A stretch of 63,886 nucleotides of DNA, from positions 1 to 63,886 of the forward strand of contig DF237473.1 in NCBI GenBank assembly GCA_000708835.1, read 5' to 3'. Below are positions 473-28,100 of the stretch, piece after piece. The translations under genes were made by a program, and so were the position numbers. Position 1 is the first letter of the stretch. Every line of letters starts with the position of its first letter. The notes under the pieces are model-generated. The model saw only the letters and a list, made by a program, of their open reading frames with translations. It did no database searches and was not told the DNA's origin. Source of the DNA: Klebsormidium nitens (lineage: Eukaryota > Plantae > Klebsormidiophyceae).

Positions 473-3311
473 GCGAGTCGCGTGATCTTATCGACGGCCC
501 GCGCGGCGTCGCTGTCGCGTGGGTCGTCCCGACCACCACGCCGGCCGCGCTGCGCGCCGCGCTTAAGCGCACGGGTTTCCCGACCATCGTCAACAAACCG
601 CTGTACGAGTCGAAGCTCCACCGGCTTCTGCACACCCTGGCCGGGGCGCGCGACGAGGACCTGCCATGCGCTGGCTGCAAAAACTGCCCGGTGAGGGATG
701 TCACCATATGTACAACTCTTCTCGACAAAGCTGCCATCGAGTCTCAAGTGCTCCGAGCATCTTTCCTCGCTTCCTGCGTCTGTTTCGGGTTTGTGATTGT
801 TCCATCTTGAAATGAATTTCGTGTTTGTCTACAAATTCAATGGGCGTGGAAAAGGCGCTATCATACAACTACAAAAGACTGCCAGGCAAAACAGCCGCAA
901 TCTCAGCGGCCAAATCACCGGTGCAGCGGTGCTGCATACACCTACGAACGATGTTTTAGTTCCTTGCGACATGGTATGCTTTCGGTCGCATACATTCAAA
1001 GCGTTCAAAATTCTGCAGGGGAGCCGAAAGGAGGAGGGGAAAGGCAAAGCCCCTCTCACCCGGCCCACCCCCCGGTTATCCGAACAGGTCGGTAATTACC
1101 GGTCGGGTTATGGGGACGGCGGCGGTACTCTAATGCGGACACAGAGCGCGCCTTTGGAGATGGGCTGGGATCGGGAGGAGTGCCACGTGGCAAACAATGA
1201 TTGCATCGTGGCTGAGATGGGCGACCAGCCGCTGCGGGGGATGGTTGTTTTGGTCGCCGAGGACAACCCGGTTTTGCAAATGGTCGCCGCAAAAACTGTG
1301 ACGAGGCTCGGGGCGCAGGTATTCCCTGCTCACATCTCTCAGTACTGAAATGAGAAAGAATTGAACAATCATGCTTATCGAAACAGGTTTTCAGTTTTTA
1401 GCGCTTTCCTTCTTTTCACCCAATCTTCTTTCTTCTCAGGTTAGCGCCTCTATCTCCTTCCCTGCACATCCATTCGCAGCAACAACCTCACTTCGACGAC
1501 GGATGCCGTTTAGCATTCCCTCTGTCACTTTTTCCGTTGAAGCGAAGTCTTGGAGAAGCCAAAGTTATCCTCATAATCTTCTCTACTTCTGACAAAAAGA
1601 TTCTCCGCGGCCACATCGACACCCTCTCGGATCTGCATGTTCAAAAAGGCTTGAGAGTCTATACACCCAATCACTAATCGATCTTAAACAAACTCCCTCC
1701 GAGGGGGAACGACTCATTGATCCCCGGCATATCAGTTAGCGGAAGTTGTCCAGCTTCGAACCGTCTCAAAACCACCCGTTTCATTGCCCCGCTTTTGCGG
1801 TATGCAAGTCCGCAAACTCCATCTGATGACCTGCGTACGGCCAGATTGTAAATCACAAGATAAGGTGACGGAGCTCGGGGCGCAGGTTGTGACGGCGAGT
1901 GACGGCGGCGAGGCGATGGAAGCGATCGTGCGACGGCGCGAGTCGACGAGCCAGATGTTTGATTTCATTTTGCTCGACTGCCAGGTAAACTTTCGTTCTC
2001 TAAAATAGGTATAGAAAGCTCAACTTATAGTAACTGGGACAGGTAGGGTTATTATGGGTGGTTAAAGTGGGTACGGGTGCGGAGCGGGTGATTATTTGGG
2101 TTTATGGTTAAATGGGCAGATCGGTATCAACAACACGAGCCCCTCATACACATTGGACGTGACTGGAACCGTAAGAGCTACAAACACGGTGATGGTTAAA
2201 GTGTTAGCTTCGTTCTTGAATTCACAATAAGTTTTGAAAGTCTTATGTCGCCGGGGCGCACGGAACTCTCGGTTAAAGGGTTCGGTTAAACGTCTGGTCA
2301 TGATTGTTAACCCGGTCTTACTTCATCCAGGTAGGAATTCATTCAAAACATTCCTGTTGGTCTTAGCGGCCATACTCCCCTCTTGTTCACGCGGTAGATA
2401 GACAGCTTTGATCAGCGTCTTCGTTTCCTTTTTTGAACCGGAGGTTTGGGATCAACGCATTCGATCAGCTTCTTCGTTGGGCAAGCCTGTGATCCTTATG
2501 CCTTTCTACGAATCCTCCCGTCATGGTGCGAGGGAACAGAAGCGCTGATTGGATCACAGAAAGGGTTTGTAGAGTCGACCAAGAGAAACTGTCGGGTTGT
2601 ATCCTGGCGATCTGAGTGCGAGAGTCGCAGCCAAAGCGCTCCTCAAAACGGCAGGAGGCTCTACTTGGCAGCCGTGCTGTGCTGCAACAAGAGAGGGCTC
2701 CTTTCGATTCGCCAATTGCCGTTCAGATACGTTGCCGCTCTCACAGGCGAAAGTGGCTGCTCTGCTTGGTCGGATTGCGGAAGCCAGTCTTGGATCAGCG
2801 TTGCCAAATCTGATTGTCTGGAAGAAGGCCGACAATCGACCAGAAGATAATCAGTAAGGTTGCGCGTCGACCGAAAACCTACTTGGCCTCCAGTGTTGCC
2901 TTTGTAGGACCGACAAGTAGGAGGTACGATACTTTTCAAGGCTTATTACTCCTGTGGTATGTAACTTGGGTTACCACGTGGATCTGAAAAGCCATCGATC
3001 CGATTGGCTGAAAAACCTGGAAAGCGTTTTGCAGCTTTTCGGTCGAGGCGCACCCTAAGCAGTTTGCTCCGATTCTACAGATGCCCGTGATGAGTGGTCT
3101 CGAAGTGACGCGCCGCCTCCGCGAACTAGAGGCGGCCTCTCGGGAGCACACCCCGGTCGTGATGCTCACAGCCAGCGCCACGCCCGGGGAAGACCCCCGG
3201 GCCTCCGAAGAGGCGGGGGTGGATTTGTACCTTACGAAACCCATAGATGCTCGCTCGTTTGTTCAGAACGTTACGGCGATCCTTCGGGAAAAAGGAGAGC
3301 CGAGAAATTAG
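473..3311 (+). CDS. Hybrid histidine kinase, AHK1/CKI1-like, 3' part only (pseudo-receiver plus C-terminal receiver domain); 5' part lies upstream of the window
   Basis: Phase-consistent exons 473-690, 1019-1318, 1886-1984 and 3081-3311, all GT-AG. The joined protein has VNKPLYESKLHRLL (recalls the AHK1 degenerate receiver), then a full receiver: VLVAEDNPVLQM...FILLDCQMPVMSG...VMLTAS...YLTKP, with phospho-acceptor Asp and Lys intact. Subfamily assignment is from recalled motifs. Confidence 0.85.
2036..2110 (+). repeat. Solo copy of the same ~70-bp arm in a kinase intron
   Basis: ggtagggttattatgggtggttaaagtgggtacgggtgcggagcgggtg aligns to 40956-41005 at roughly 75% by eye. Confidence 0.55.
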
Positions 3312-4712
3312 AGTGGGTGGGCTCGGACAAGACGGCGCACAGTTGCGGGGCTAGAAAAAGACGCATGGATGTCCGCACGTTTGCTCAGAACGTGATAACC
3401 GCGCTCCTTCAGGAGAATACGAGGAATTGACCGAGGAGTTAACCGAGGAGTTAGTTAAGCGAGGAATCACTTGAACGAGGAAACACTTAATGAGAGTGGT
3501 GGGCTAATACTGTGGCGCACAATGATTAGCGCAGCTAGAAGGCAACGCGGCACCAAAAGCAGGGTGGACGAGTTGAACGCCGTGCCCAGGGATCCCTCCA
3601 GCTGACGCCAGCTGACCATCATCCTGGTTGGCTAACAGGTAATCAGGTTATATTTGAAACCTTTTCGTAAGTGCGGCAGATCCTCTGGTCTTGGGGAAGG
3701 TTGGTCGTACCTGCTCGTAAGGTTCTGAGCAGGTAATAAGTAGACGATACCGCGGAAAAGGTTGCATGCCGTCAAAACTTTTGCAGACTAACGTAGAATC
3801 TGCATCATTCATTAGGTGTACTTTATTACAAACGCTTGTTAAAACTAGGACAGACAAAACTGTACTGATATATCATACACAGGACGGAGTGGGATTTAGG
3901 CAATCATTAGGAGGTGCATGGAAAGTGGAGGAGCACTCTCAAAGTCAAATTGAACGTTAGGAAGGCAGGACTTCAAGCGACTGTGGTCAAAATGGACACA
4001 AATTGGTACGCAATCAACTTATATCTAGGTTGATTTTGAAGTTTGGACATTGAATCGATTCTCCAAGGCGGCTCGAGGTTATTTTAATTGGCCCACATCT
4101 GAAATTAAATTGAACCATTTCGAGCCCTTTTCGAGCAGCATAACGTTTGCTAGCGGCCACATTTCCGGTCAGATTTGCCTAGCTGCCGGAAAATCCGTCG
4201 GTGAAGTGCACGGACCCGGCCGACCCGGGCACGTCTCGCCTTTCCTGGGATCACTGGACTACAGGCTGTCCAGTGATCTCAGACTAGATCACGTACAGGC
4301 TTTAATATGATTGCACACTGATCGACATCAGCGGATATATGGATAGTAGATCATTGGCATCGCCAAAACAAATTTATTATTCAGTCGCATCAAATTTATG
4401 AGTCGGACATATAATTGGACATATTGGCCCGCGGCCCGCCATTAAAGCTTGCTGGATCAAATAGACAATCCAATCATCAAAATACTTGGTTGGGTCGGAC
4501 GTAGATGCGGCCATAAAGTGGCCCCGTGGCAACCGGCCATGGCGCGTCCGCGTCCCAAGTCTTGCGGACTGCAGTGCACGTGCAAGAGTGAATATATCAT
4601 TGGTGCACTGCCAGAGGTATTGATTTATGGCTCGATCGTGCACAGTGCACAGGCTGCAGCTAGAGAGTTGGGAATTAAAGGTGTCAGGAAGAATTCTGAG
4701 CCGGCCGGGGCG

Positions 4713-4785
4713 GGCCGGCGGCCCACACAGCGGTGCACAGTGCACATGTACCTTCCACGTGCCACGCTGTGTCCCGCCGCCGGCC
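4713..4785. other. GC-rich interrupted hairpin
   Basis: ggccggcggc (4713-22) pairs with gccgccggcc (4776-85), and acacagcg (4725-32) pairs with cgctgtgt (4765-72). Confidence 0.55.
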
Positions 4786-7700
4786 GGGCCGCGCGCTTCC
4801 TGACAAGGCCAGACAAGGCGACCGCAGAAGCAACTTAGGCCTGATCATTCGGATCACATGGACCATACGCCAGGTTCATTTTATCGAAGAACATCAACAC
4901 TAGGACTAAAATCAAGCATGCAATGTGAAGTGCATGAACAGACCCTCTGCTTGTGAAAACATAGTACAATCAACTGTCCCGCAATCATACTAAGAACTTG
5001 GAACCATAATTCTCGCGGCGCCTCTATCTGCGATCGGTACAGAGGAGCTAATCTTCATGAATACAGAACTGCATATAGCTCATGGTGCCGCGCGCCCCGG
5101 CATGCATCATTTGTGCCACGCTCCGACCGTCAGCTGGCATCGTGTCAAAACATAAAAACACCTTTATAGCGGTGCACTGAACTCCGCTTTTTCGAAGTCG
5201 AGGGGGGCATAGAAGCCGGTTTTGAGTAAAACCCGAATTTGCCCGAGAGGGTATGGAAGCCGGTTCTGCTTTTCCCTCTCCAACTTCACTTCTGGGGCGG
5301 GGTTATGGAAGTTGGTTCAAGGCGTTGCAGTTGTTGGAGGGGGGCTGTTTCAAGAAGAGCGACGTTTCCATGGGGTCGTTTTTCCCGGCAACGTAGACCC
5401 CCAACAAGGATCCCGTGTCTACGGAGAGAAAAACAAACGCGGACATACGAGCTGTTTTTTGAAGGTTTTAGGGCTATACGTATGTGTCTAGTTCTTGAAG
5501 GGCACATGGTTCTAATAATCTGAGTGGTTCTAATAACAGCTGAGTTACAGTAAAACCTGATTAAAGCGTTTTGCAAGCCAGAGCAAAGGTAGAGGGGGGG
5601 GAAGCGGTCGGTGCCGATGTTGTACTACTAGGGGTCAAAACTCGATCGACTAGAGAGCCCCCCCCCCTGGAGGTCGCGCGGTTTTAGATGCTTATGGGCC
5701 TTCAGTTGGACCCCCTGGAATTGCCGGTTTTTAAACCGGAGTTCGGTGCACCACTGCAAAAGTATATTGACACGATGCCGCAGCCTAGCTGGGCCGGCGC
5801 CTGCGCGCGCTGGCGTGCTGGCACTAGGAGTATACGTGGCAGCCATGACGGGGCGGCCTGCATGCACGGCCCATGACCCGGCCGGACTCACCGATGTTTT
5901 TAATGGAAGCGCATGCGCATGCAACGGTCGGACTCCTCGAAGGTTCGAGTGGCTATCATGCGTAAACCATTCCAATGGAGGTATACCATCGTTATATGCA
6001 TGAGAAGCCCCAGTGGCGAGTGTGGCAGGCCGCCTACTCGGCTATACGGCGTATTAATTGTCGAGAAGAGACCATCATCGGCCGACCTGCTAGTTAAAGT
6101 AAGCTCTCCAAGGACTCCGACGAGCCAAATGATTAAGTTAGTGCACTCAGTGATTCAAAGAAATCATGCACAGCCTGCGATCCCAGAGTCACTCAGTAGC
6201 TAGCTGATTCCGACCATTCAGCTTTCTTCGTTCAATCAAGCAACTTATACGATAAATTGATCGACGCCGGTTGAGCTTGATGAGCGGGCTGAGCAATCGA
6301 TTGGACCAGAGTCGGACACCGGACAAGGATATGATTATAAGGAAACCGTAAATAATTGTCAACTTATGAATGCAATCCCTAACGTACCAGAAAACCTAGC
6401 TAGCAACTAAAACAATGATTGTCTTAATGTCAATCGATTTATTCCCCCTACCCAGCGATCTTACAACCGGAACTCGAAAGTCGCTGCAAATACAACGCAT
6501 GCTCAGGCTTGTACGTGATCTCTAACAGTGCAATGACAACTTGGAATTGCCTTTGCCTATTTCGTAGGTGCTTGCGCTTCTTTGCACTGTCTATTGAGGT
6601 AGTAAACCCGAAATGCGGCTGCTAGTACCCCTGTCCAAAATAAGATTGCAAAAAACGCTAGTGCTAATCTTAACGCAACAACAACAGAGCAACACCAACC
6701 AAGGTCAAGTGGAGGTGGATTCTTCCCATGCTGAGTTGAGTCACCATGTAAAATGTCAAAATAGTAAGAACCCACCTATCAGATACACAACCACCGCTGA
6801 ATGCTCCAACAATGCTTAGACTCGCGGCCTTGCACCTAACTTCTCGCAAGACGCACAGAAAATCTTCGTAAACCTCCTAACCCCACATGTTAACCCCACA
6901 ACGAGCCACGTGGCACCCCCGAAACACCGCCCCTTGAGCTTGCGCCATCCGCCCCCATGCACTGCGTCACGTCGGCCCCAGTAAAAACCTCAGTCGTACC
7001 ATACTCTTTGCACGCGTCTGCACTATGCGTATTGGCCCGTTGCTTGCGATGCGCGTCTGCACACTATGTATCAATTACAAGGGAAGCGACGCCGACTGAT
7101 CAACACCTCATGACACGGGAAGCCCTTCTTGACTGCCCCGTGCCAACACCCACCGATCTCGGTTCCAGTTTCAGTGACCGACAGTAGCCGCAGCACGATC
7201 TCGTTACGCCAGTCCTTCTTCCGCTCTCCGTGCAACTCTCCAGCCACGCGTCCAAAACACCCGCCGTTTTGTTCACCACTCGTCAACCTACCGCTCTCAC
7301 CGACTTTTCGGTCAGCTCTAACCAGAACACCCTCCTCTCCCAAACCTCTTTTCCCCTCCGGCCACCGTTTTCCCGGTTTCCGAGCAGAGTCCAGAATAGT
7401 CGTCAACGCAACAACCGTTCGACCCCACTACCGCTCCCCTTCCCCGAACATCGAAGCTTCACTACAACACTTCTTTTTGAGCACAAACATTCAATGTACA
7501 CAATCTTTCGTCAACAATAGTCCTTAATGCACAAGAGCATTGACACCTCGTCATCTGACAATAACCTCCCCAAACCCAGCCCCTCAACCCGCCTCACAAC
7601 GGCGGGTCAACTGTCGACCCTAGTCCAGGTAACCCTGCTGGTAAAGACCCCCCATACTTCCCTCCAACCCCGTTAGCAGACATCACCCCACCCCCGGAAA

Positions 7701-7883
7701 CCCCCCCCCATCGACGAGGGGTTCTGGAACCCCCCACGGCGCTCCTCCGCGCCCCACCCGGCTTCAAACCGCTTCGCCATGGTCTCCGCCGCCGCCCCAC
7801 CCGAGAAGCCGCCAGACGACCCCCCCGAAATGAAACCGTCCCTCTCGCCCGGATGCGAGAAACTCCAGTCCGCACTGCCGAGG

Positions 7884-10800
7884 CTAGTGGTGCGGCGGTA
7901 CTCCCCCTGTTGTGGGGGGGGCACCCATTCCCGTCACGGAGCTGCCGTACTCGCGGGCAAACTTGCTGACGTTGCTGTGGCCCCTGCTGGCGTCAGCGAC
8001 GGCCCTGCTGACGTCACCCCCCGCGAAGCTCTGCGCGCGCGCGAGGTCGCTGAACCCCTGGTGGTCCATCCCGTAGTGGGGGGGTCCGCTGCGCCCGGAC
8101 TCCGCCCCCCCGGAGAGAAACACCTCGCTGCTGACGCGGTTCCCGCTGAGCGTCCTCAGCGTCTCCTTGCGCAGCGACATCAGCCCCCCGTCGCGCGGCT
8201 CCTCGTACCGGGGGGGTGGCATCGCTTGGGGCGTGTACCCCCCCGCAGCGGCGAAATTCCCATCTTGAGGGAGGCACGTGCGGCACCGGGGGGGCTGCCC
8301 GTTGATGACCGGTTTGAACGGAACAGTACTCTCACGACCGCACATCGAACACGGGCCACGGTACAGGGGTTTCCCGAGGCGCGTGTCGGTCCCGGTGTAT
8401 TTCCAGTCGGGGCGGCACGGGAGGCCGGAGGAAGGCCCCGAACCGCTGCGCAGCATCTTGCTCTGCTTGTCCTTGTGGCGGCGCACGTAGACGTCCTCGC
8501 CGTCTGCAGGAAATCGGACGGTTCAGAGAAAAGAAGAATGGACAGCAATGAAAACGAAGCGCACGAAAGCTCGAGGCAGAAACGAAAAAAGAAGCCCTAA
8601 AACGGTGTCCATTGCACTTCTTCGTGTCTCGGTATCACTGTCGTCTCGCGACTGTTTCGCAATTGCCATAAAGCGATCAAAGGAGGCAGGGCCGCATAAC
8701 TGACGCAACACACAGAAGGCGAACTGGACACTATCGATCGAGCCATGGAGAAGCTAGCGAAACGGAGAAAAACAAGAGGATAACAAAGAAGGGCAACCTT
8801 ATCCAACAAGTGGGCAAAACGAATCTGCTTTCCGTCCACCAGCCTTTGCGCACTTCTTTTTTTGGTTGACGAGCAACCAACGAGAAAAACGAGCAGATCG
8901 AAAAAGAAGGGAAGGAAAACGGAGGAAACTCGATCTGTTCTGAGATAACAGAAGCGAGCAGAACAGAGGAAATGAAAACGGGAACCGTGGGAAAGGAACT
9001 GACCAAAGAAGTTGGCGAAACGAATCTGCTCGATCTCCAGCCACCAGCCTCTGGCGCACTTTCAAATTTGGTCAACGAGCAACGAGAAAAGCTAGCAGAC
9101 CGAGAAAAGAAGGGAAGAAAAACGAAGGGAAACTCAGTCTGCTCCGAGAGGGAAGAAGCGAGCAGAACGGAGGAGAAAGGAATACGGTGAGCAAAGAAGG
9201 TTACCAGAAAAGTAGGCTAACCATCTGCTCTCTGGCCACCAGCATTGACGCACTTGTTCGGCTGTTGATAACCGGATTATGAGAAATGGAGAACTAAGAA
9301 GAAAAGGGGAAAGCTCACCGAAGAAGTTGGCGAACCGAATCTGCTCTCCAGCCACCAGCCTCTGACGCACCTCCTCGTTGGTCCAGTAGCTAAACTCCAC
9401 GATCGCGAACCACTTGCCGGGGTGGTTCTTGTTCTCGCGGACGAGCGTCTTGGAAACAGCGCCGTAGCGGGAGAAGAGCTGTTCTGCGTACTGTTCCGCG
9501 TTGCTGCAAAGGGGAAAAGTGCCAATAGGGTTACAAGTGAAAGGACCAGGATTTCGGGCTTTCAAGGTAGTTAAAGGTGTTGTGGAGGTTTCTGCCTCGA
9601 GGGTCTTCGTCGCCAGTACTGAATCTCCCTTTTGGATTTGCCCTGGAAGCAGCGCCAAAGCGCGAGAAGAGCTGTCTGCGTACTGTTCGGCATTGCTGCA
9701 AGGGAATAATACGTGTTGATAAGAGTACACCCTTGACTTCTTCCTCGAATATCTTCGTCGCCAGTTTCAGATTGCCCTTTTGAATTTGCCCCAGAAACAG
9801 CACCGGAGGAAGTGCAGAGCTGTTCTGCGTACTGTTCAAGACAGGTGAATCACTAAACAGATTCTGGCCGGTTCAAATCGTCCAATAAGACAAACACATT
9901 GATCAAGCAATTCAACACTATGATCCTGGCGAATTCACTACCTGGCGAATTCACTCCCCTGGAAAGTTTTGCAAAGGTAACTCACTACTCGAATCCTGGC
10001 CGGTTCGGATCCCGAACAAAGCCAAGAATATCCGAAAAGAGTCAACCCTATAATCCTGGCCGGTTGACGTCACTGGGAACATTTGAGCAGGTGACTCACT
10101 ACTCGAATCCGGGCCGATTCGGATCCCCCGACAGGAACGTCGCGACAAACTTCGCCGGCAACTGGCTGATGTTCACTTTCGGGCACAGGTCGTCCTGCGG
10201 CGAAAATTCGACGAAGATGGAGTCGTCCTTCTCCGAGCGGTGTTCCAGCGCCTCGGGGGAGAACCCTGCGTAATCGCGAGCCCAAGGGTCGTGGGCTGCC
10301 AGGCGGGCGGGGGGCTTGACCGGTAGGGCCAGCTGCTGAGACCGGTAGAACTGCAGCCAAGAGACGCATTGTTTTAGCAAGACAATGGAGTGATGAAATC
10401 AATATCCGTAACGTCAAAGTGTCGAACGAGGTGGCAATCAAGGCGGAAGGGGTCGCATTCTGCAAGGCGCGCGGGGGGCTTGCCCGGTAGAGCCAACTGC
10501 TGGGTGCAGTAAAACTGCGCACAAACAAAATTGCTCTTAGCAAGACCAGTGAAGCGATGGATTCTACTTTTCGCCCGTTGAGAAGTTGTACGAGGTTGCA
10601 ATTGATAAGGAAGGGGTCGTGGGCTGCGAGGACAGACCCCCAAAAGCATCCTCGAAAATCAGATAACACAGCATCAAGAGATGGCTGTTTGCTCAAGAAA
10701 GCAGAACAGACCCTTGGTTCTTTCCGGAACAAGGAAAAGACATGCAGCAAGCATTCAACCTGCGATTCTGCCCCCACTCCACTTGACGCAGTATTCTGCT

Positions 10801-13800
10801 GCTTTTGGGAGGCTCTCTCACAAAGTCTCCATCCGTCCTCTAAACTTCTGAACTCAACAAAAATAACCAGAGAAATTGCATGTACTTCGCATAAGCAGTT
10901 TTTAAAGTCGTTTCAGAGTACTTTCGGGGGGCGTAATAAAGAAAGAGAACACCTCACCTCCAAATGCTGCGCAGAGTCCCTGTCCAACTCGCTCCGCCGC
11001 TCTTGCTCGAACGCCAGGCTTAGCCGCGCACCCTCGTCCTGTTTCGCGATCCACCCGTCCGGAGCCCTCGAAAACGCGTTCATCAAATGACCGCCGTTGC
11101 TGAGCTGGGCTTCGCGGAGCGCGCTCACACTGTCCCGGGGCACGCTCACAACGTCGCGGGGCATGTTCACACCCTCGCGGGGGCCGTTCACACCGTCCCG
11201 GGACACGTTTGTGACGTCGCGGGCAACGTTAGCGCCCTCGCGAGCCGCATTCAAAGCCTCACGCATCGCGCTTTCGTCCCGGAATCCTCCGTACATTCGC
11301 ATGAAGCTGAGCTCCTCGGCGCGTCCGGGAACGTCCAACCCGGAATCGGACCCCGACGCCTTCAAACTTGCGAGGGATCCCCCCGAAAACCCGCTCGAGA
11401 ACGAGGCTGCCGCTAGTGCCGCGCTGGAGACCTGCGGCTCTTGGGGGATATTCACACCGCTGCGGGGTCGGTTCTCCTCGAACCGCGGGGCCATCTCGCG
11501 GTACATCTGTTCCGCCCGCGCCTCCTGGTGGGAATACGCCCGAGGATCCTCCGGGTGGGAATACGCCCTGTGCTCGTCCAAGGGGGGCGAGCGGCGCAGA
11601 GGCGAGAGGCATTGCCCCGACTCACTGCTCGGCCCCGAACCAAACATGGTGGTGTTAAACGGCCCCCCCTGCCCGAGACTACCCGTGATCCAGGCGTCGC
11701 TGCTCCCCCGACTACCCGGATGCGACTGGCCCTTCTCCCCGTCCTCGGGATTCGGCGGGTTTACGAGGTCGGGGGGGTCAATGTGGAGCCCGGACAGCGT
11801 CGGGATCAGCTTCGGGGGGGATGCCACGGCGTTGTCTGCGAAGCGGGGATCCCCGGAGGCGAGATGTCGGTTGCCCCCGGAAATAGTTGAGTGCCCGGAG
11901 TACTGCTCCGGGGGGGACAAAGGCCAGGCGTTTGTGCCCGGGGGAGACGAACCGAGGCAGGCACGGAGGATCCATGGCTGGTGCTGGGGGGTGAGAACGC
12001 GGGCGGCAGAGTACGCGGAGGGGAGCGGCGCCAGCTGTCGGGGCTTAAGCATTGTTGCACTGCAAATGGAACCGACAAAACGGGTGGGTTTATGAAAGGG
12101 TTTGCAATTGAGTTGGATTGGGAGGACAGACGATTGGAGACACGTGGACACAAATTTTGGAAGAAAACGGATGAGCGCCGGGGCAATCCAAACGGCGGAA
12201 GAAACGGATGGGTTTAAGAGAGGGTTTGCGCCTGACGGACAGGCAATGTGTAAGAAACGGAGGACGTGGACGTGCCGAAACACTGCAAACGGCGGATAAA
12301 GCCGATGGTCTTCGGCCTTCGATCCGTTGCAAGACTTATCAGAGATGGCTTGACCGTGATTACGACGCCAGACCATGTCAGTCGAACGGCGACGGAAGAG
12401 GGTGAGCATTTAGGGTGAGCATTTATAGCGATGAAGACAGTGGGCGGAAATACGTAGTGGGCTTTGCCTTCGGCCCCGAGGGAGTTTCGAATTGAAGTAC
12501 TTAGCAAACGCCTCGAGGATGGACAGAACAGAACAAATGCCCATGGTCATGACCCGTTGAAAGATGGCGGAATTGTGCGATTGGGGAACAAGGAGCTTGA
12601 CAGAGACGGAAGGATAATAAGGCCACGAACAAACGAACCGCTGGTATGCCAAAACCGGCACGTATTGGCCACATCTTTGATTCCCTCACCCCAATCTCTC
12701 AAAGTGTGGCGTTTTTCAAAAGCGTATGCAACAAAAACTGAGGTCTTAACAAAAGATGGTATACGTAGAAGAGCGGTCCCATTGACCCTCTCGGCCGGCT
12801 TGAAGGTCCTCGACTGGGTTTCCATGCTTTGACAGACATTTAAGCAGCACTTTTGATGAGGAACAGAAGCATGGCGGCATCAGTGACAAATCGAAGAACC
12901 CTTGTTGCCTATAAGTGGCAAATGGACTAAATTTCAAGCAAACGGAAAGCATTCATCTGGCTTACCTAGTATCGCTCCTCTCGACATCCAACACCAGCGC
13001 TACAGTGACCTCGCCCTCCAATTCCAACGGCAACAACGCCTGTCAATCATGGAAATTGGCATCACATGAGATTTACTGATAACGTTGTCCACCTTACTGA
13101 CCGCAAATAACACTGAACCCAGAAGAGAGAACGGATAGGAGAACGGAAGAGAGACTGAACGGAACGGATATCACATTGAACGCGAGTGTACGCAGATTTT
13201 GGGATGCAGGGTCGGAAGACATCGTTTCCTAGGAGGTTATACGCGATTCACCGAAAGTAGCGGGACTTTGCATAAGTAGCCAAAGGGTCTTTTCAGATAC
13301 TCAGCGGAATGAATGGAATCAAGGTAGGTTCGAGAAGGAATCCGAGAGCTTGAACGAGAAGCGCAGACATTCATGGCAAATGATCTGACACGCTGATTCG
13401 AGGGGGACTCTTAGAGTGAAGCACTCAAGCAGCGCTCTAAGGAGGATCAACAAAAACTGTTACTTCGAAAAGTGTACCTGAATCTTGCCGGCGCTTCTCT
13501 CCCGCACAAACTGCGGCACCATCTGGAAGGGGTCGACCCGGGCCCTGTTCACACTCCTCTTGGCAGCTGCACTCAGGGCCTTCTGAAGGAGGTGTGAATC
13601 GGCGTCTTGGAGAGAGCGGGGAAGCCAGGCCCTCACGGAGTCTAGGGAAGTCCAAACCTGCAGAGAGGAAGCCGATGGTTGCGAAAGCCGGAGATACAAT
13701 GGTAACGGAAAGGCGACTCGGGGTCGGATTGAGAATCGAATCTGACGGTCACGGTCGGACCTGGGAATTGGGAAACGTGCTTGGCGACACGTCAACACAA

Positions 13801-16800
13801 CGAGCAGATATCGATTGACATCGGGAAGCTAAATTACAAACTCGCTGCCTCTCAAAGAAAGCCAGGAGCAGATGTACAAGAGCCAAGGTGGCGATGACGA
13901 GTCCGTTTCCAGTCATGGTCACAGGTCTTCAGTAAAACTGCGTGACAAGAAGCGGTTCAAAGTCCGGCCTCAGAAATCTTTCGAAAAGGAAAGGCGTCAA
14001 GAGGCCCGGCAATAGTACCACATAAGCCTGGCCGTACAAACGACCAGTGAAGACAGACACCGTCCAACTACTCGGCGTCCTGCCAATGACTGAAAGTAGA
14101 AATGATACTTTGAAACCTCTCCTTAGGCTCCCTTAACCGACTGTGCTGACTCAAAGCTGCCAACATACGAGCACACTCATAACTTTCATCACGGATAAAA
14201 TCTGTCTTCAGAACAACCAAAGATCCAAAATGCAAAAAGCCGTGGTTCTTTCTGCTCTGCAGAAGCGTAAACGCACCTCGGAATCGGCGTCGACCTCGCC
14301 AGAGAAGCTCCTGATGTCGAACACTAGGTCCGATACTGATGCAAAGAAGGTTGCCTGCGCAAAAGAAAAAGGGTTTGTAAACGAAGCAATCGTTGAAGGG
14401 ACGTGACTGCTTGACGTTGTCAGGGACGTGGTTGCTACATCGCAACATCAAAGGGACGATGATTTTGGGTCAGCGCCAGTAGCGTAGTAAGTAGGGACTA
14501 CAGCTTCATCAGTAAGAGGTGCTCGATGCTCACGTCTTTTCAAAAGGATTCCATTCAAACAACAAGACTGGCCTTGAAGTGAGGTCACAAACAAGGTGCA
14601 GAGGCACGAATGATAACACGAGATGGCAATGATTAGGGAGCGTTTGAAACAGCACAATGAACAAACCTTGATTCAGCATGACTTCAGCTCGGATACACAG
14701 CCGAAGGAGAACGATCATACAAAGCGGGCTCTCACAGATTCCCACTTACAACAGAGCAACATGAACTTTCTCAAATCTCAAGAATGTCTGATTGGAGCCT
14801 GCTCAACGCTTTTTTAACACGTTGATGGTTCACAAAATAACCCTCCCAGACCTGGAAAAAGCGTGACAAGGAAAAGAGCGTACCTTGCTTGGGGCCCGGA
14901 TGACGTCACAACCCTGATTCCATAACTGGCCGCCGTCCTGGAGCTTGCTCGCAGTCACGAAAGCGTGTAGGAGCCAGGCGGGGGAAGCTCCATCCTCAGC
15001 ACGCTGCAAAGTTAAGAACGAGCATTGAACCACTTCTCTGACTGCCCTCTTAGAGGATGGAACACACCAGAAGCGACTGAGTCAGACATTGTGAATTTTC
15101 ATGCCTTCTTGTCACCGGGTTTCTGCAGACAAAGGGAGTCTTCGCCTGCCCATGTCGTCTTGGTGCACAAACCAGACGAGACCTTCCAGCGTCAAGTCGA
15201 TCGGTTTCTTTCCTTAACCCCAAAAGGACCTTTCAGCCTGTTTCCGACCCCGTTTCTAGATTTCCAAGAGAGGACCCTCCAGAAAAATATAGCTCGACTC
15301 GGTTTCTTGCTGAAAAGAGAGGACCTTACAGCATGATCTCGAATCAGTTTCTAACCTTAGCAATGCAGTAGGTTTGTAATCTAACAAGAGAGGATCTTCC
15401 AGCATGATCTCAATTCAGTTTCTTACCTTGGCGATGCAGTAGAGAAGCTCCCCGCTCTCTTGAGAGAGCAGCCCCGTGCAGAAGCATGCCCAGGTGGCAC
15501 GTCCAGATTGGTCGACCCGTTCAACCACCTTCCCTTCATCAACCTGCACTCACAAATTCTGAGCTTCAGGAACGCAAAGCATCACTAGGAGCAGATTTTC
15601 GCACTAAACAAGTTCTTATTCAATCACTACCCTAGGACGAGGTTTGCACATTTACTGTGTTTGGAAAAGTACATCTGACCTGCACTCAAACTTTACGCTT
15701 CAGGGAACCTACTTTGTACAAACTTGGTTCGTACCCTTCGCAATTTCGAGACTCCAGGCAGCTGCGACCGATTCCCAAGTAAGAGGTTTCATTCCTCTTA
15801 CAGCTCTAGGCCGAGCAATCACCGTCACCTCTGATTTCAGGGATGGATTAAAAAGTGCCACACAAGCTTAAGTTTTTCCTTCTTTGATCTGTCCAAGTCA
15901 AGGGAAGAAGAACAATCTCAAAGAAACATTCTTGTCCAAAGCAGAAGGAATTGCGTTCAAGTAGCACCAAGTAACAGACAGCTCCGCGAAACCACTCTGC
16001 TGGTCAGGCGCCAGATCAGACGAGAGATTTTAGAAAATTCACCCAAGGGTTAACCAAGCGGGTTGAGCAGACCCTTACCAATTGCAGGAACTGTTGGTCG
16101 AGGTAGGTTTGGAGACAACCCAGGTACTGATTCTCAGGTCGCCCCCTGAGAGTCCACTCTTCCTTCTGTGCGGAGAAGAAAGACAAGAGTCAGCCAAGAG
16201 CGCAGAATAACCAGACTGGGTTGAGAACTCGTTAAGGGGACAGCTCTCAGCTGTGAGAAGTGAAGAAAGATAACCAGTGTTGTTATGGGAACAAACTTGA
16301 AGGACAGAGTCACCAATCTTACCTTTCAAAAGATAACCAGTGTTGTTACGGAACAAAGGGTCACCAATGTCACCTGTCACATCCGAAACCTCTTGACCAA
16401 ACCCTGTCACATCTAAAATCCTCTTGACCACAGAACCGACGGGAGTGAAACAAGGACAGAGTACTTACTTTCAATGATTGAAAGCTCTAGAGACAAGAAC
16501 ACCCCCTTGCCCGGGTGTGCCCCACAACATCTGCTTCGGATTCATCTCAACTTCGGAAGAGAAAATCACTAGCATACGAAATGCTGAATAGTGATACTTC
16601 TCAGAGCATTAGAATCTTAGAAGCCCTCAGCGCTGCGTTCCTATGGTTCCTACATGGTTGCATGCATGCAAGCACCAAAGCAATGACTCGAAAAGTCCTA
16701 ATCCGCTTTTCATGGAAATAGTTGCATCCGTGATTGAGAAAGGAAATCACAATCCTGGTAACACAATCGAGCAACGCCTTTCTGTCGTCAGAGCCAACAG

Positions 16801-17233
16801 GCTACTGCAATGACCAGAATCAAAGGATGACAAGTTGAGTCCTAGTAATGGCTTAGGTGCGCGACTCCAGATTAGACAAGCCAACTGAGACTTACCAACC
16901 GCAAATGGAAGACAAGACATTGTTGTTCACAGGGAAACAGAGACAATGAAAGGTCAAAGAACGACAAGATCTTGGTTCTCGAACACTCTCGACCCTCTTA
17001 TACAAGAGTCCTACTAAAGACAGGGCTTCAATCAACAAGGACGTAAGCTGAGATGAAGCAACCAACGCACGAAAGCAAAGCCAAAGCAAAAGCAGAGGGA
17101 CTTCCTCAAAAAAACAAACGGAAGTCTTTGTCTCACCTCGGCCAATACTGCCAGCAGCTCAAGCCCGAAGCGGCGCTCGCTCGGGGGCCTATTCACACAC
17201 GCGATGGAGAGTGCAGTGTCTATGTCCAATCCC
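7884..17233 (-). CDS. Multi-exon RNA-related protein: DUF3825-like domain, long low-complexity linker, RRM, CxxC-x18-CxxC zinc ribbon, Gly-rich tail; N-terminus unresolved
   Basis: Phase-consistent exons (minus strand): 17233-17137, 16165-16079, 15543-15427, 15003-14884, 14354-14277, 13657-13478, 13039-12966, 12059-10958, 10350-10100, 9503-9319, 8503-7884 (or to 7673 if the G8 run at 7914-7921 is really G7). The join reads LELLAVLAEKEEW...LQTYLDQQFLQLVDEGKV...WACFCTGLL...WLLHAF...ATFFASVSDLVFD...WLPRSL...MVPQF...GKIQALLPLEL...VALVL...ATML...AYSAARVLTPQHQPWI, which follows the recalled DUF3825 motif order. RRM: VNISQLP...LFSRYGAV...WFAIVEF...VYVRRH. Zinc ribbon: CSMCGRESTVPFKPVINGQPPRCRTC. Confidence 0.8.
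8800..10630 (-). repeat. Echo stacks around the RRM exons 10350-10100 and 9503-9319
   Basis: Degenerate copies at about 8805-8855, 9005-9065, 9190-9260, 9555-9700, 9745-9840, 9975-10065 and 10440-10530 (e.g. repeated ctgcgtactgttc, actcactactcgaatcc, ccagccaccagcc). Confidence 0.85.
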
Positions 17234-18260
17234 CTGTTCAGAAGAAGCGCGTGTTAGGAGGATGTAAGTTAACCGTGCTGGGAGAGGAAGGGTCGCAAAT
17301 TCTGTACCCATGGACAGCGAACCTTACCCCTTGTCAGAAGGATCCGTCAATTCGTGCCCTCCAAAGTAAAGTAAAAGAAGACCTTCTCATCAGGATAGGC
17401 AGGAACGCTGTCGTATGTTAGCAAGAACAAACAAGAACAAAGGATTTGCAGGGGGGTTCAAGAACCACCAGGCTGGTGGGGGCACTGCCCAAGAAACGTA
17501 AAATCTGAACCTAACCAAAGCTGGGGCAGTGCTATTCAGATCTTCAGTCCTGGGCCTAGGTAAACGTGAGTAAGCTGTGATTGGAGGAAACCCAGGGATA
17601 CACCAAACCAAACAAGAAACTATTGCAGCGAAGTCGGTGTGAGATGCGGGTAGCCTGCTAACATACAGCGGGTTAAAGTATAACAGCCAGCGACTCTCCT
17701 CCTTCCTTCCAATCTTAAAGACTTTGAAGGTTTCCTTTGCCCCTCAGCCTGTATGCATAATGCAGGGGGTAAAATATTGTGTGATACAAGGATTATAACA
17801 CTGCTTCTTGTAAAAGCAGAGACAACCCCCCACCCCTTGTGTGACACTCCTAAGCTCCACCCCCTCTCTCTCCTTTGAAAAGCAGGGCCCCAGTTTTAAG
17901 GCTTTAAGGGGATCAGAAGCTCCAGGTTAGGAACAGGTTGGCAACGCACTCATATCAACTCTGCATCAGAGACGTTCGCTGTCCTGCAAAGTCGCCAAAC
18001 CTAATTGCAACCGACCGAAGCAGAAAGAGGGAGGGCCGGAAAAAGACTGGGTCTAACTCTGCACCAACTGCTCTTGACACTTGGAGAACCGCAATTGAGA
18101 ACGAGGGCTGATAGGACTCACTTCAGTAGCTCTTGGAAGAGCGGACTCTCGCAGACCCCCCCCTGTTGTTTTTTCCCCTGCGCCTGTGCCTGTAAAGAAG
18201 GGGCACGGGCAAGATTCAGCATCAGATTTAGCTCTAAATGCAAGAGAATTATCATTCGTG

Positions 18261-20080: not shown

Positions 20081-20483
20081 CGTACACGATTGGCACAGCT
20101 CGGGAAAACGCACTGAGCTGAAGAGGCCGCCAGACATGTCACCTCGCAACCCTTCCAGCATCACACCCTTCCCTCCCTCAACTGACCACATCACGTTGTC
20201 ACCCAACCCCGTGCCCGGTTCATGACACCACCCTCCCATTGCCCCCTCCTGCTCTCTGCTGGTGTCAATGTTTGGACGAGCTTGAGAAGGGTCTGTGACT
20301 AGGGTGGGTGCAGCTGCATTTGAGCTGGCCTGTGAAAGCGTGGCAAGGGAAACTGTTGTAAGGGTACTGCAGAGTGCATCAGAAAGGGCGGAAGGGGGAA
20401 GGGCTTGCAGGGGCTTGCTAGAGCAAGTCCCAGGCCCCATAACGCTCATCATGCCTCTGACCTCTAAGCAGGGTGCCACCGTC
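20081..20483 (-). CDS. Candidate upstream exon of the DUF3825/RRM gene (Ser/Ala/Thr/Pro-rich)
   Basis: Open frame within ORF 20003-20479, bounded by acceptor ctcgcag (20484) and a strong donor ACG|gtgagt (20080). Not linked by phase to the downstream exons. Confidence 0.3.
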
Positions 20484-25170: not shown

Positions 25171-28100
25171 TCACGGCTCTTGCTTCCCCTCTTCCCGCAT
25201 GGGGCTCATAGGTAGGAGCTTGTCGTCTTCAACGCCGCTGTACTCTCCGTTTGCCTTGCCGGCTTGCCTGAACAGTCGCCTCCATCCAAACCTCTCGTTC
25301 CATGAACTTGGCCCGTGCACCGTGGTCTCGATAGGTAGGCTATCCTTGTCGCCCTCCTTGATCTCCTTCTCCTTGTTGTCAGCAGCTTCCTAAAACAGTG
25401 AAACCATGCAAGTTGTTTACGTGCTCCATGACATGCACGTCTTCTTGTCGCATCACTGGCCGTTTTAGAAGCGGGGCAGAAAGGGACTGATGTCCAGACG
25501 CAGACAGAGCTAAGGTTTCCAAACTGGTCGTGCGATCCAGATCGTAGGTTCGAATAAGTGAAGCGTTCAGATGCACAGGTTGCAACAACGACGTGTCGCT
25601 AATGAACGGCCAAACAAATAGCCAAACGCCAAACTCGCTTTGAAATGTATCTTGATTTGCAGAAGCGGTCTGCTTATGATGAAGTTGACTCTTACAAACA
25701 GGGACCTAAGAATGGAAGGAAGGGAGCAGGAGCGACACAATTGTATCGAGGAAATAGAGATGTGGTTGTTCCCAAGCCAGGACCCACCCTCTCCTTCTTG
25801 ACCGCGCGCTCGTAAAGCACCCCCCCAAGGATGCACAGCAGCAGGGCGCCGATTCCCACCACGCTCGCGTGCTTGTCCCATATCATGATGTTAACGAGCA
25901 CCGTGATCAGCTTGTTCATCACGCCGAGGACTGTGAACGCGGTCGGGGAGAGCGCCTGGCGGCACGAGAAGCCGAAGTAGGAAATTGCGACGCCAAACAG
26001 GCACGACGCGACAATGGGCACGATTTGGGTCCACCACGCCTGCGAGTCTTGCGCGATGACTCCGCGGAATTCGCCCATTCCGTAGAGCACCGGGGGGGAG
26101 AGGAGGAACGCGGTGAGGTTGTTGTAGTAGACGAGGCCCCACGTGGGGAGCCCGATGTGCATGACCACGTGCTTGATGTAGATCATGTCGAACGTGATGA
26201 CGACCAGGTAAGCGAACGCCCACGAGTACGCGCGCACCTGTGAGATGACGTCAGCGAAGACGTCAGCAACCTGATGATGTGGAACGCGATGACGACCCGG
26301 TCTGCAAACCTTTACGAGCACGCGCGCACCTGTTGCCCGAGAGATGATGAGATGGCGTCAGCTCTGATGTCAGCAAAGTGGTTATGTCGAACGTAATGAC
26401 AAGCAGAATGTCGCTGACAATGCGTCCATGAAGGCCCCGTAAACAAAGGAGCAAGGCACTGACAAGTCGCAAAGAGACACAGGCAACGCCCCTGTGCCTG
26501 GAGTGTATGCGAAATTTGGGCCAGACACTAAAGAAATTCGAAGAAGCTCCAGACTCAGCAAACGGCAAAAAATCCTCTTAATCTGGGTGCAACACGTTCA
26601 AGCGCCGCTTGGACGTGAATTTAATGATCAGTAGCTCATCACTTCAAAGAGCGACCTCCGAACGAGCCTTCGAAGGACTGCAGTTCACTAAACTCGAGAC
26701 GCCATTTATCAGATTTCTGGGAGGAGGCGGCCGACTCTGGAACCGTAGAATTGAAGCGCAGTCACTGCTTGCACCGCACCCAATCGGATCCGAGCTGTTC
26801 CCCCAAACAAAGAGTCAGTCATTATGCACTGACTGCCCCCACGAAGCCGGATTGCAGATGACTTCAGCGTAGTCGAAAGGCTCTCCAAACGCGTGAACAA
26901 AACGGATTAGGTATCGGAAGTAAAGACGAGCTCTGCACCAAACGGGTATCAAAGGTAGTCCCTCGCCGTGACTTCTCAGTAAGCCATGTAGGCTTGCTTC
27001 GAAGCCGTCACTCTAAGCAGGTCATCCACCGCTGACGTCAAGTCCGCCGACTCGTAGATGGTTCCCTGAAATTACTGATGGGTTCCCAACTACGTTCGAA
27101 GTACACAGCATGTGCTTAGAGCGATCCAGGCAAAGACAGACTCATACAAGAAGGCAAGGACTCATCCGAGCAGACACGAAATTGGAAAGCGTTGTCTGTG
27201 TTGCTTGTCTTGAAGATAGGTTTGATCCCTCACCATGAAACCGAGTCCGAAAACGCAATCCAAATCCTTGCCGTAAATACCGAGTCCTTCGATATGTACG
27301 GGAATCCCCTCATCAATATGACCCCCAGACTACCGGTCTGAAGTCGGAGTTAAGAATGCTCGTGATCGTTTGGGCACAGACTCAAAAGCGTACCTTCAAG
27401 ATGCTTACTTTCATATCGTGGACTTCGTCCACCGTTAGTCTCACCGTGAATGCAGAGTCCGTTATCATGTACGGGAGTGCCCTGAAACGAAGACCCCCAG
27501 GCTACCATTTTGAAGTCAAATTCAGAATCCTCGAGATTTTTCGGGCAGGCCCGGACTCAAAAGCGTACTTACAAGAGGCTTACTTTTATATCGTGGACTT
27601 TTTCCAAGCGTTATTCTCACCGTGAATGCTGAGTCGATTATCATGTACGTAATCGCCCCATGAAGATGACCCCCAGACTATTGCTCTGAAGTCAGAGGTT
27701 CAAAATGCTCATAATTGGTTGGGTGTACACAGACTCAAAAGCGTACTTACAGGATGCTTACTTCCGCTATATTGACTATTTCCAACCGCTACTCACCGTG
27801 AATGCAGAGTCCGTGATCATGTACGTGATGGCCCCCATGAAGATGACCCCCAGGCTCGCAAACGCCGGGAGGCTGGGCCACGCCCGGCCGGTAAACAGCG
27901 AGTCACAGATGGCCACGAGGATCGGCGTCGAGCTCCGGAACACTATGAACGTCTCCACGTTTGCGTACTGGAGTGGACGCAAAAGGTGGTGTCAATATAA
28001 AAGTGCCCTTCAGCTGTCAACACTCTGTACTTTGCATAGGTTTGCAACACTCTGAACGTCTCGACACTTGCGTACTGGAATGGCAGCCGACGACGGTGTC

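Follow-up and report, generated by a model that had tools for sequence, protein, structure and literature searches.

An expressed Klebsormidium nitens gene joining a DUF3825 domain of likely bacterial or phage descent to RRM-like and zinc-ribbon regions

DUF3825 (PF12873) is a widespread bacterial and phage domain of no known function, absent from the literature in the papers searched. A stretch of the genome of the streptophyte alga Klebsormidium nitens (contig DF237473.1, positions 1 to 63,886, hereafter the window) raises the question of how such a domain came to be split over short exons of an algal gene, and of what it may do there. An earlier note, made from the letters of the window and its open reading frames (ORFs), had joined eight exons on the minus strand into a hidden DUF3825 domain, fused to an RNA recognition motif (RRM) and a zinc ribbon, and had proposed an RNA-processing or RNA-defence system acquired from bacteria. 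These exons belong to KFL_005240030, an expressed 13-exon gene already catalogued automatically. We give a probability of about 0.5 to the reading that it encodes a DUF3825-bearing RNA-binding protein whose domain is of prokaryotic or phage origin, the steps being transfer, intron gain, and an RNA-directed action of DUF3825.

A thirteen-exon gene with a complete DUF3825 domain

KFL_005240030 lies on the minus strand and encodes a protein of 1045 amino acids, recorded as a hypothetical protein (GAQ89443.1) and auto-named "DUF3825 domain-containing protein" in UniRef (A0A1Y1IFP2). Neither the domain nor the architecture can thus be called hidden or unseen, as the earlier note had them, the identical protein being already public. 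The architecture is nevertheless unusual and undescribed in the papers found, and what is new here concerns the likely fold of the domain, how far it is conserved and how it has decayed in sister copies.

Each of the eight exons joined in the earlier note, exons 3-10 of the gene model (Table 1), is flanked by AG and GT, and the joined frame is stop-free over 617 codons, the other two frames carrying 17 and 22 stops. The frame begins one base into exon 17233-17137, and that exon is therefore internal. Window 11950-17900 was compared with contigs from four public runs, which come from four studies and bear two organism labels, and all seven junctions of the eight exons were seen as CT..AC joints, equivalent to GT..AG on the minus strand. 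The single spliced contigs carrying them measure 1864 to 3020 nucleotides (nt) and place the junctions at the coordinates proposed in the earlier note, allowing for ambiguity in the position of the cut. The runs are recorded as 'RNA?' only; since their contigs skip the introns exactly, they are transcripts.

The public protein equals, letter for letter, 76 N-terminal residues followed by the 969-residue model derived here. Exon 1, which maps exactly to the first 53 of these residues, contains no recognised domain and is 43% identical to its counterpart in the ortholog described below; its RNA support is indirect, in that a 255-nt loose end past 17233 could span exon 2 and 186 nt of exon 1. For exon 2, the loose-end consensus at 17233 (runs X1, X9 and X13) is identical to window 18122-18151, and the segment CESPLFQELLK is 100% retained in the ortholog. 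A start codon near 18254 was considered and dropped for the annotated exon 1, which agrees both with the canonical acceptor at 18189 and with the 255-nt overhang of the RNA contigs. Downstream, the junctions of exons 10-13 rest on the open frame, on the public gene model, on the ortholog and on how long the contigs are, three of them reaching 2157-2192 nt past 11950, where the model requires 2048 nt to the stop codon.

The 5' region also shows other transcript forms. In runs X9 and X13, position 17833/17834 is joined to exon 3, a skip of 600 seen at lower depth, and contigs in X1, X13 and X16 read on from exon 3 without a splice, as far as 17862-17900 and further. Neither alternative form contains an in-frame ATG upstream of DUF3825 within the stretch read (window 17137-17900).

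The full protein matches Pfam PF12873 at 129 bits (E 2.9e-37; gathering cut-off 27 bits) over the entire profile (1-238/238). Taken alone, the second, third and sixth of the eight exon pieces each give PF12873 as the top Pfam match, at the colinear profile positions 7-34, 38-67 and 136-186. In addition, a hidden Markov model (HMM) built from 118 bacterial DUF3825 proteins scores 79.1 bits against the joined algal translation (HMM positions 36-275 of 285; maximum among 2000 shuffled controls, 4.8 bits), and phrog_11623 matches the algal domain at E 5.7e-8. On this profile evidence the region is a member of DUF3825/PF12873, as the earlier note had recognised. Compared to individual bacterial proteins, the algal domain shows 28-30% identity over about 265 residues.

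The family motifs align in order, namely ExW, YLxxxF, FNTGL, W, F...L.YD, P, KR, VPQ[FY]...IQLLLPL, ALV and AYxNARL...W. Those listed in the earlier note proved accurate, each recurring in both the bacterial consensus and the algal alignment, and the deviations that it had pointed out (FCTGL, AYSAAR) are real: the algal copy reads FCTGL, IQALLPL and AYSAARV, and retains 45 of the 97 positions at which the bacterial clade is conserved to >=90%. Retained residues include E38, Y57, E95, K192/R193, Q215, Y255 and R259, the K192/R193 pair being kept according to the HMM alignment; the MAFFT mapping gives N at K192. The residues called invariant were defined on a single narrow clade of bacterial proteins, 47-100% identical to the query, and need not be catalytic. 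A Pfam scan of the first 100 residues of the protein found neither OST-HTH/LOTUS nor any other domain.

Linker, RRM-like region and zinc ribbon

The DUF3825 domain is followed by a disordered linker of about 340-380 residues, encoded mainly in exon 10, whose frame is continuous, which matches no Pfam family and which is 41% identical to the ortholog. The next region resembles an RRM. RRM_1 (PF00076) is matched by exon 12 alone at E 0.01 and 16.1 bits, with the gathering cut-off at 20.7; the best Protein Data Bank (PDB) sequence matches of the region are the RRMs of CIRBP, RBM3 and PABP (E 0.06-0.26); and two strands resembling ribonucleoprotein motifs, KFVATFL and KWFAIVEF, can be read directly. 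The nearest Atlas feature cluster, at a score of 0.76, combines RRM_1 with a RanBP zinc finger and serves as no more than a lead. The evidence for an RRM being weak and below the Pfam threshold, the region is named RRM-like. The ortholog matches exon 12 at 90% identity.

The zinc ribbon in exon 13 displays two CxxC pairs with a VPF.P core, separated by 18 residues, one more than in the family name CxxC-x17-CxxC. It matches TIGR04272 at E 7.6e-6 and 25.6 bits (cut-off 36) and PF23477 (zf_Tbcl_2) at E 9.5e-5 and 22.5 bits (18.9 bits on the whole protein; cut-off 27), thus staying under both cut-offs, and is near-identical in the ortholog and in both paralogs. Zinc binding has been demonstrated for a domain of the CxxC-x17-CxxC type in small proteins of Methanosarcina (PMC12704099). 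Of the fusion proposed in the earlier note, the single frame running through all parts stands, and the RRM and ribbon assignments keep the sub-threshold scores given above.

The annotated protein ends at 7884 after '...GMGAPPTTGGVPPHH'. The frame one base off after a run of eight C is open for 83 residues (PPPQQGEYRRTTSLGSADWSF...GWGDVC), whose identity to the in-frame C-terminal tails of the ortholog and of the two paralogs is 58-68%. The shift is either a homopolymer assembly error or a recent frameshift, and the public protein is probably about 60-75 residues too short.

Table 1. Features of KFL_005240030 in window coordinates; exons 3-10 are the eight joined in the earlier note.
Feature	Position	Strand	Remarks
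Exon 1	20239-20081	minus	annotated ATG at 20239; MGGWCHEPG...CQSCT; maps exactly to first 53 residues; GT donor
Exon 2	18189-18122	minus	AQAQGKKQQGGVCESPLFQELLK; AG/GT borders; translation agrees with GAQ89443.1
Exon 3	17233-17137	minus	
Exon 4	16165-16079	minus	
Exon 5	15543-15427	minus	
Exon 6	15003-14884	minus	
Exon 7	14354-14277	minus	
Exon 8	13657-13478	minus	
Exon 9	13039-12966	minus	
Exon 10	12059-10958	minus	final ~29 DUF3825 residues, then Pro/Ser/Gly-rich disordered linker with short (P/S)RDxVN-type repeats
Exon 11	10350-10100	minus	in-frame, derived downstream
Exon 12	9503-9319	minus	in-frame, derived downstream
Exon 13	8503-7884	minus	in-frame, derived downstream; frame enters from exon 12 via split GAC codon; stop annotated at 7886-7884; equals C-terminus of GAQ89443.1
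DUF3825 domain	17154..11972	minus	residues 103-356 of GAQ89443.1, over exons 3-10
RRM-like region	10155..8469	minus	exon 11, exon 12, start of exon 13
Zinc ribbon CSMC-x18-CRTC	8352..8274	minus	exon 13; four cysteines: CSMC GRESTVPFKPVINGQPPR CRTC; VPFKP core
Probable C-terminal continuation, other frame	7924..7673	minus	past C8 run at 7921-7914

The introns around exons 11-12 (window 8798-10125) contain decaying copies of exon edges, including splice sites: stretches matching the exon 11 3' edge lie at 10089-10125, 9975-10011 and 9843-9879, those matching the exon 12 5' part at 9453-9496, 9646-9689 and 9794-9837, and those matching the exon 12 3' edge at 9314-9346, 8999-9031 and 8798-8830. 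Similar repeated FYRSQQL pieces occur at the paralog loci. Elsewhere in the window, the ORFs at 45154-45597 and 25692-26321 (minus) resemble, by eye, the ATPase part of an ethylene-receptor-type histidine kinase and a nucleotide-sugar transporter, respectively.

Relatives of the domain in algae, bacteria and phages

Compared with 1.84 billion representative sequences, the sixth exon in the earlier note's numbering gave a single match, an ORF fragment (P0001) from a Klebsormidium relative; the full protein was probably missed there since its cluster is represented by a paralog without this exon. In the relative's genomic contigs bearing this fragment, gene-model exons 5-11 are 39-79% identical to those of K. 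nitens and the introns do not align. Longer contigs from two JGI samples (L012 and L013) contain the complete set of 13 exons, colinear with those of K. nitens, bounded in the same way and with uninterrupted frames. The rates of nonsynonymous (dN) and synonymous (dS) substitution between K. nitens and this ortholog (Nei-Gojobori) are (i) 0.325 and 1.68 for DUF3825, a dN/dS of ~0.19; (ii) 0.062 and 1.49 for the RRM-like region plus ribbon, ~0.04; and (iii) 0.331 and 1.09 for the linker, ~0.30, all three ratios being rough, with dS near saturation and an alignment assembled from BLAST segments. Rough as they are, they show the DUF3825 domain to be constrained by purifying selection.

K. nitens carries two paralogs, KFL_012070010 (P0122; partial, 814 amino acids) and KFL_001560080 (P0124; 706 amino acids, 'Sel1 repeat-containing protein'). 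Both preserve an intact linker, RRM-like region and ribbon, 66-81% identical to those of KFL_005240030 and with the same exon layout, and DUF3825 survives at their loci only as relics of gene-model exons 8 and 9 (sixth and seventh in the earlier numbering). The exon 8 relic contains in-frame stops at both loci (L010, K. nitens DF237105.1, 24997-52525; L011, DF238156.1) and an additional frame break in L010. The earlier DUF3825 exons were not found within 8 kb upstream in L010, and the L011 contig ends too early to tell. Among the K. nitens copies found, only KFL_005240030 retains DUF3825. Other features of these loci are the gain of C-terminal Sel1 repeats by KFL_001560080, the annotated start of that gene midway through its linker exon, a 319-residue gene model (3832-9809) annotated just upstream of it over the DUF3825 relics, and a Sel1 gene downstream on the L011 contig.

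Bacterial members were collected by scanning bacterial genomes with the motif VPQ[FY]-x8-IQxLLPL and then searching from the true matches. The scan returned six matches: (i) two true DUF3825 proteins (226-228 bits), from assemblies labelled Actinomycetes and Actinomycetota; (ii) two AIPR proteins; and (iii) two junk matches. The AIPR proteins (L004 and L006, from a metagenome-assembled genome of Rhizonema sp.) carry VPQF-x8-IQxLLPL by chance, match PF10592 at 92.7 bits and are unrelated to DUF3825. In the search, 303 bacterial proteins match at E<=1e-3, with PF12873 in 120/120 among the matches listed, and the source names span several phyla, including Gemmatimonadaceae, Acidobacteriota and Vicinamibacterales. 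Phages carry the domain as well: it is encoded on 164 IMG/VR contigs and corresponds to phrog_11623, of unknown function. The 30 Atlas clusters nearest to DUF3825 are all bacterial or viral.

The majority of bacterial and phage members consist of the domain alone, at ~260-290 residues. Atlas clusters include fusions, with a cold-shock domain in 70% of the members of one cluster and OST-HTH in 13% of those of another, consistent with the bacterial distribution and OST-HTH link that the earlier note had named. A bacterial subgroup of 339-357 residues (P0045, P0106, P0111, P0114, P0115, P0117 and P0119) ends in a C-terminal WRRVSxGDRCPxCGxxTKCAISADNHxxVC extension, which resembles a zinc-binding motif, is distinct from the algal CxxC-x18-CxxC ribbon and has no Pfam family recorded.

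In one assembly labelled uncultured Actinomycetota bacterium (L009, 1-8000), the DUF3825 gene stands between gyrA/DUF3566 and a tyrosine integrase with a TrwC/AAA_30 relaxase-helicase; judged by this gene content, it sits at the edge of an integrated mobile element. The phage neighbourhood comprises one tail protein plus unknowns only. The PADLOC defence models gave no match to bacterial DUF3825 members. Scanned crudely, the 77 loci examined in bacteria and viruses showed no conserved antitoxin-like neighbour common to the groups, some loci having a 55-residue ORF upstream, others a 58-residue ORF downstream and others none, and a toxin-antitoxin pairing was accordingly dropped.

Several further searches were without result, including exon 6 of the earlier numbering in the ESM Atlas (no usable match) and by tblastn against plasmids, and the motif pattern in viral contigs. 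A metagenome scan with the algal domain yielded 49 pattern matches and no confirmed member, the exact 8-residue words being too strict, as even the known ortholog was missed. Eukaryotic DUF3825 was found only in Klebsormidium and its close relative, in a survey that was narrow (a 60-residue query and this exact-word scan). Since the domain is abundant in bacteria and phages and among eukaryotes was seen only in these two algae, horizontal transfer from bacteria or phage into the Klebsormidium lineage is the simplest reading and a likely one.

The PDB sequence search found no solved structure for DUF3825. An AlphaFold2 model of a bacterial member (predicted local distance difference test, pLDDT, 87.9; predicted template modelling score 0.82) comprises two modules, each built of helices, then a four-stranded antiparallel sheet, then a closing helix. 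The C-terminal module (residues 150-260) superposes on PrpT, ParE and RelE with Z 6.1-5.1, 88 of ~93 residues aligned and a root-mean-square deviation of 3.5-4.7 A; the RelE/ParE superfamily, including the YoeB, HigB and CdiA-CT RNases, occupies the top 25 rows, with Z down to 4. Foldseek also retrieves RelE toxins for the C-terminal part (probability up to 0.80, E 0.16), and gave no significant match against PDB and BFVD. Folded alone, the N-terminal module reaches a pLDDT of 95.0 and finds the same toxin families at Z 4.7 or less. At the profile level, bacterial members match PF12873 only in Pfam at E<=0.01, with no RelE/ParE profile. The modelled resemblance to RelE/ParE thus amounts, for the C-terminal module, to a lead and, for the N-terminal one, to a lead at most. 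An internal duplication giving rise to the two modules was considered and dropped (hhalign probability 0.2%).

Proposed function and comparison with known systems

In the reading that we favour, a DUF3825 domain would have entered the Klebsormidium lineage by horizontal transfer from bacteria or phage, gained introns and been joined to RNA-binding parts. The protein comprises a leader of ~100 residues, the complete DUF3825, the disordered linker, the RRM-like domain and the four-cysteine zinc ribbon. The last two would hold RNA, and DUF3825 would serve as an effector or a second binding module, acting either on the held RNA or on a complex of RNA and protein, the ribosome for example. An RNA-directed role is suggested mainly because DUF3825 is paired independently with three RNA-binding modules (cold-shock, OST-HTH and RRM-like), the fold lead being secondary. 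The RNA-processing or defence system of bacterial descent proposed in the earlier note keeps a likely bacterial or phage origin; its function stays conjectural, no PADLOC defence model having matched a bacterial member.

Several observations weigh against this reading. For origin, the phylogeny against bacterial homologues gives the algal pair a very long branch, of ~9-10 changes per site, that lies between bacterial and viral groups, and therefore names no donor. For function, (i) the clade-invariant residues H159, R180, Y243, T247 and N86 are replaced in the algal domain; (ii) the whole protein gives no RRM_1 match in Pfam at E<=0.1, and RRM and zinc ribbon both score under curated thresholds; (iii) two K. 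nitens paralogs do without DUF3825; and (iv) the literature search returned no paper on DUF3825, PF12873, the gene's identifiers or the SRA runs. A characterised plant family, the finding that would have told against the earlier note, thus did not come up either. For the fold, Foldseek favours Sm-like folds (E 0.09) over RelE for the N-terminal module, all structural Z scores fall under ~8, the level from which the tool takes a match to exceed a common arrangement, no relationship in sequence links the two modules, and the evidence comes from a bacterial model and not from the algal domain, whose own fold we infer from it.

The alternatives differ in what they make of the DUF3825 part. It may be conserved and non-catalytic, a binding or regulatory module for protein, RNA or ribosome, with the core function residing in the RRM-like and ribbon end; we hold this to be rather unlikely. 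In its favour, fewer than half of the clade-conserved positions are retained, with substitutions at several invariant polar residues, the RRM-like region and ribbon are under selection five times tighter than DUF3825 is, and both KFL_012070010 and KFL_001560080 keep the C-terminal end with a decayed DUF3825. Furthermore, ParE-type toxins, members of the nearest fold class, act through protein binding (gyrase), not RNA cutting. However, residues invariant in one narrow clade need not be catalytic, the sites listed above from E38 to R259 are retained, and we know of no catalytic residues for the DUF3825 family. A bolder proposal takes DUF3825 as an RNA-cutting or ribosome-acting effector that is assembled from modules of RelE/ParE-like type and found chiefly in phages and soil bacteria, the Klebsormidium copy having been domesticated from a prokaryotic conflict system as the effector of an RRM- and zinc-ribbon-guided RNA-control or antiviral factor; such a specific scenario is somewhat less probable still.

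A decaying, functionless relic of an old transfer, with only the RRM-like and ribbon part mattering, would fit the very long branch of the algal domain and the fate of both paralog loci, which ended in this way, with exon 8 relics bearing stops or a frame break and an exon 9 relic left. It is nevertheless improbable, given eight exons intact and stop-free in two species, splice sites that are kept and used, a dN/dS of about 0.19 at a dS near saturation, and a match over the full Pfam profile. Finally, the otherwise bacterial or viral occurrence of DUF3825 could raise the suspicion of bacterial contamination, or of a misassembly fused to an algal gene by the annotator. This is excluded: the seven GT-AG introns are removed in RNA contigs of four studies, contigs that continue into algal exons, and the same split gene occurs in independent assemblies of the relative.

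The locus changes no established view and is of interest in three respects. It provides a eukaryotic, intron-bearing, expressed and selectively maintained copy of a domain otherwise without a described role, and adds one more well-documented candidate for gene transfer from prokaryotes to a streptophyte alga. The sister copies constitute a natural experiment in which DUF3825 was dropped and the RNA-binding end kept. The third independent pairing with an RNA-binding module would narrow the function of DUF3825 to RNA and, together with the tentative RelE/ParE-like fold, offers a concrete hypothesis that is cheap to pursue.

Compared to bacterial and phage DUF3825 (PF12873, phrog_11623), the algal protein shares the whole-length domain, the order of motifs and, with the bacterial fusions, a nucleic-acid-binding partner; it differs in being split by seven introns, in standing N-terminal to a long disordered linker, and in having an RRM-like region and zinc ribbon as partner instead of a cold-shock or OST-HTH domain. 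The K. nitens paralogs depart from KFL_005240030 in having DUF3825 reduced to relics of two exons, one with stop codons, and KFL_001560080 adds Sel1 repeats. With RelE/ParE toxins, the second module of bacterial DUF3825 appears in the model to share the order of two helices, a four-stranded sheet and a C-terminal helix, a basic pair and an AYxxAR motif being placed on flanking helices. In contrast to these toxins, the module belongs to a larger two-module domain, has no profile relationship with them and no conserved antitoxin-like neighbour, and its Z scores lie within the chance range. Proteins of the MARF1/limkain-b1 type, which combine an NYN nuclease with RRM and OST-HTH/LOTUS domains, likewise join RRM-type domains to an effector shared with bacteria in a eukaryotic RNA-binding protein (PMC2848206); their effector is NYN and LOTUS is present, whereas the algal protein carries DUF3825 and, according to Pfam, lacks LOTUS, so that the likeness is one of logic and not of homology.

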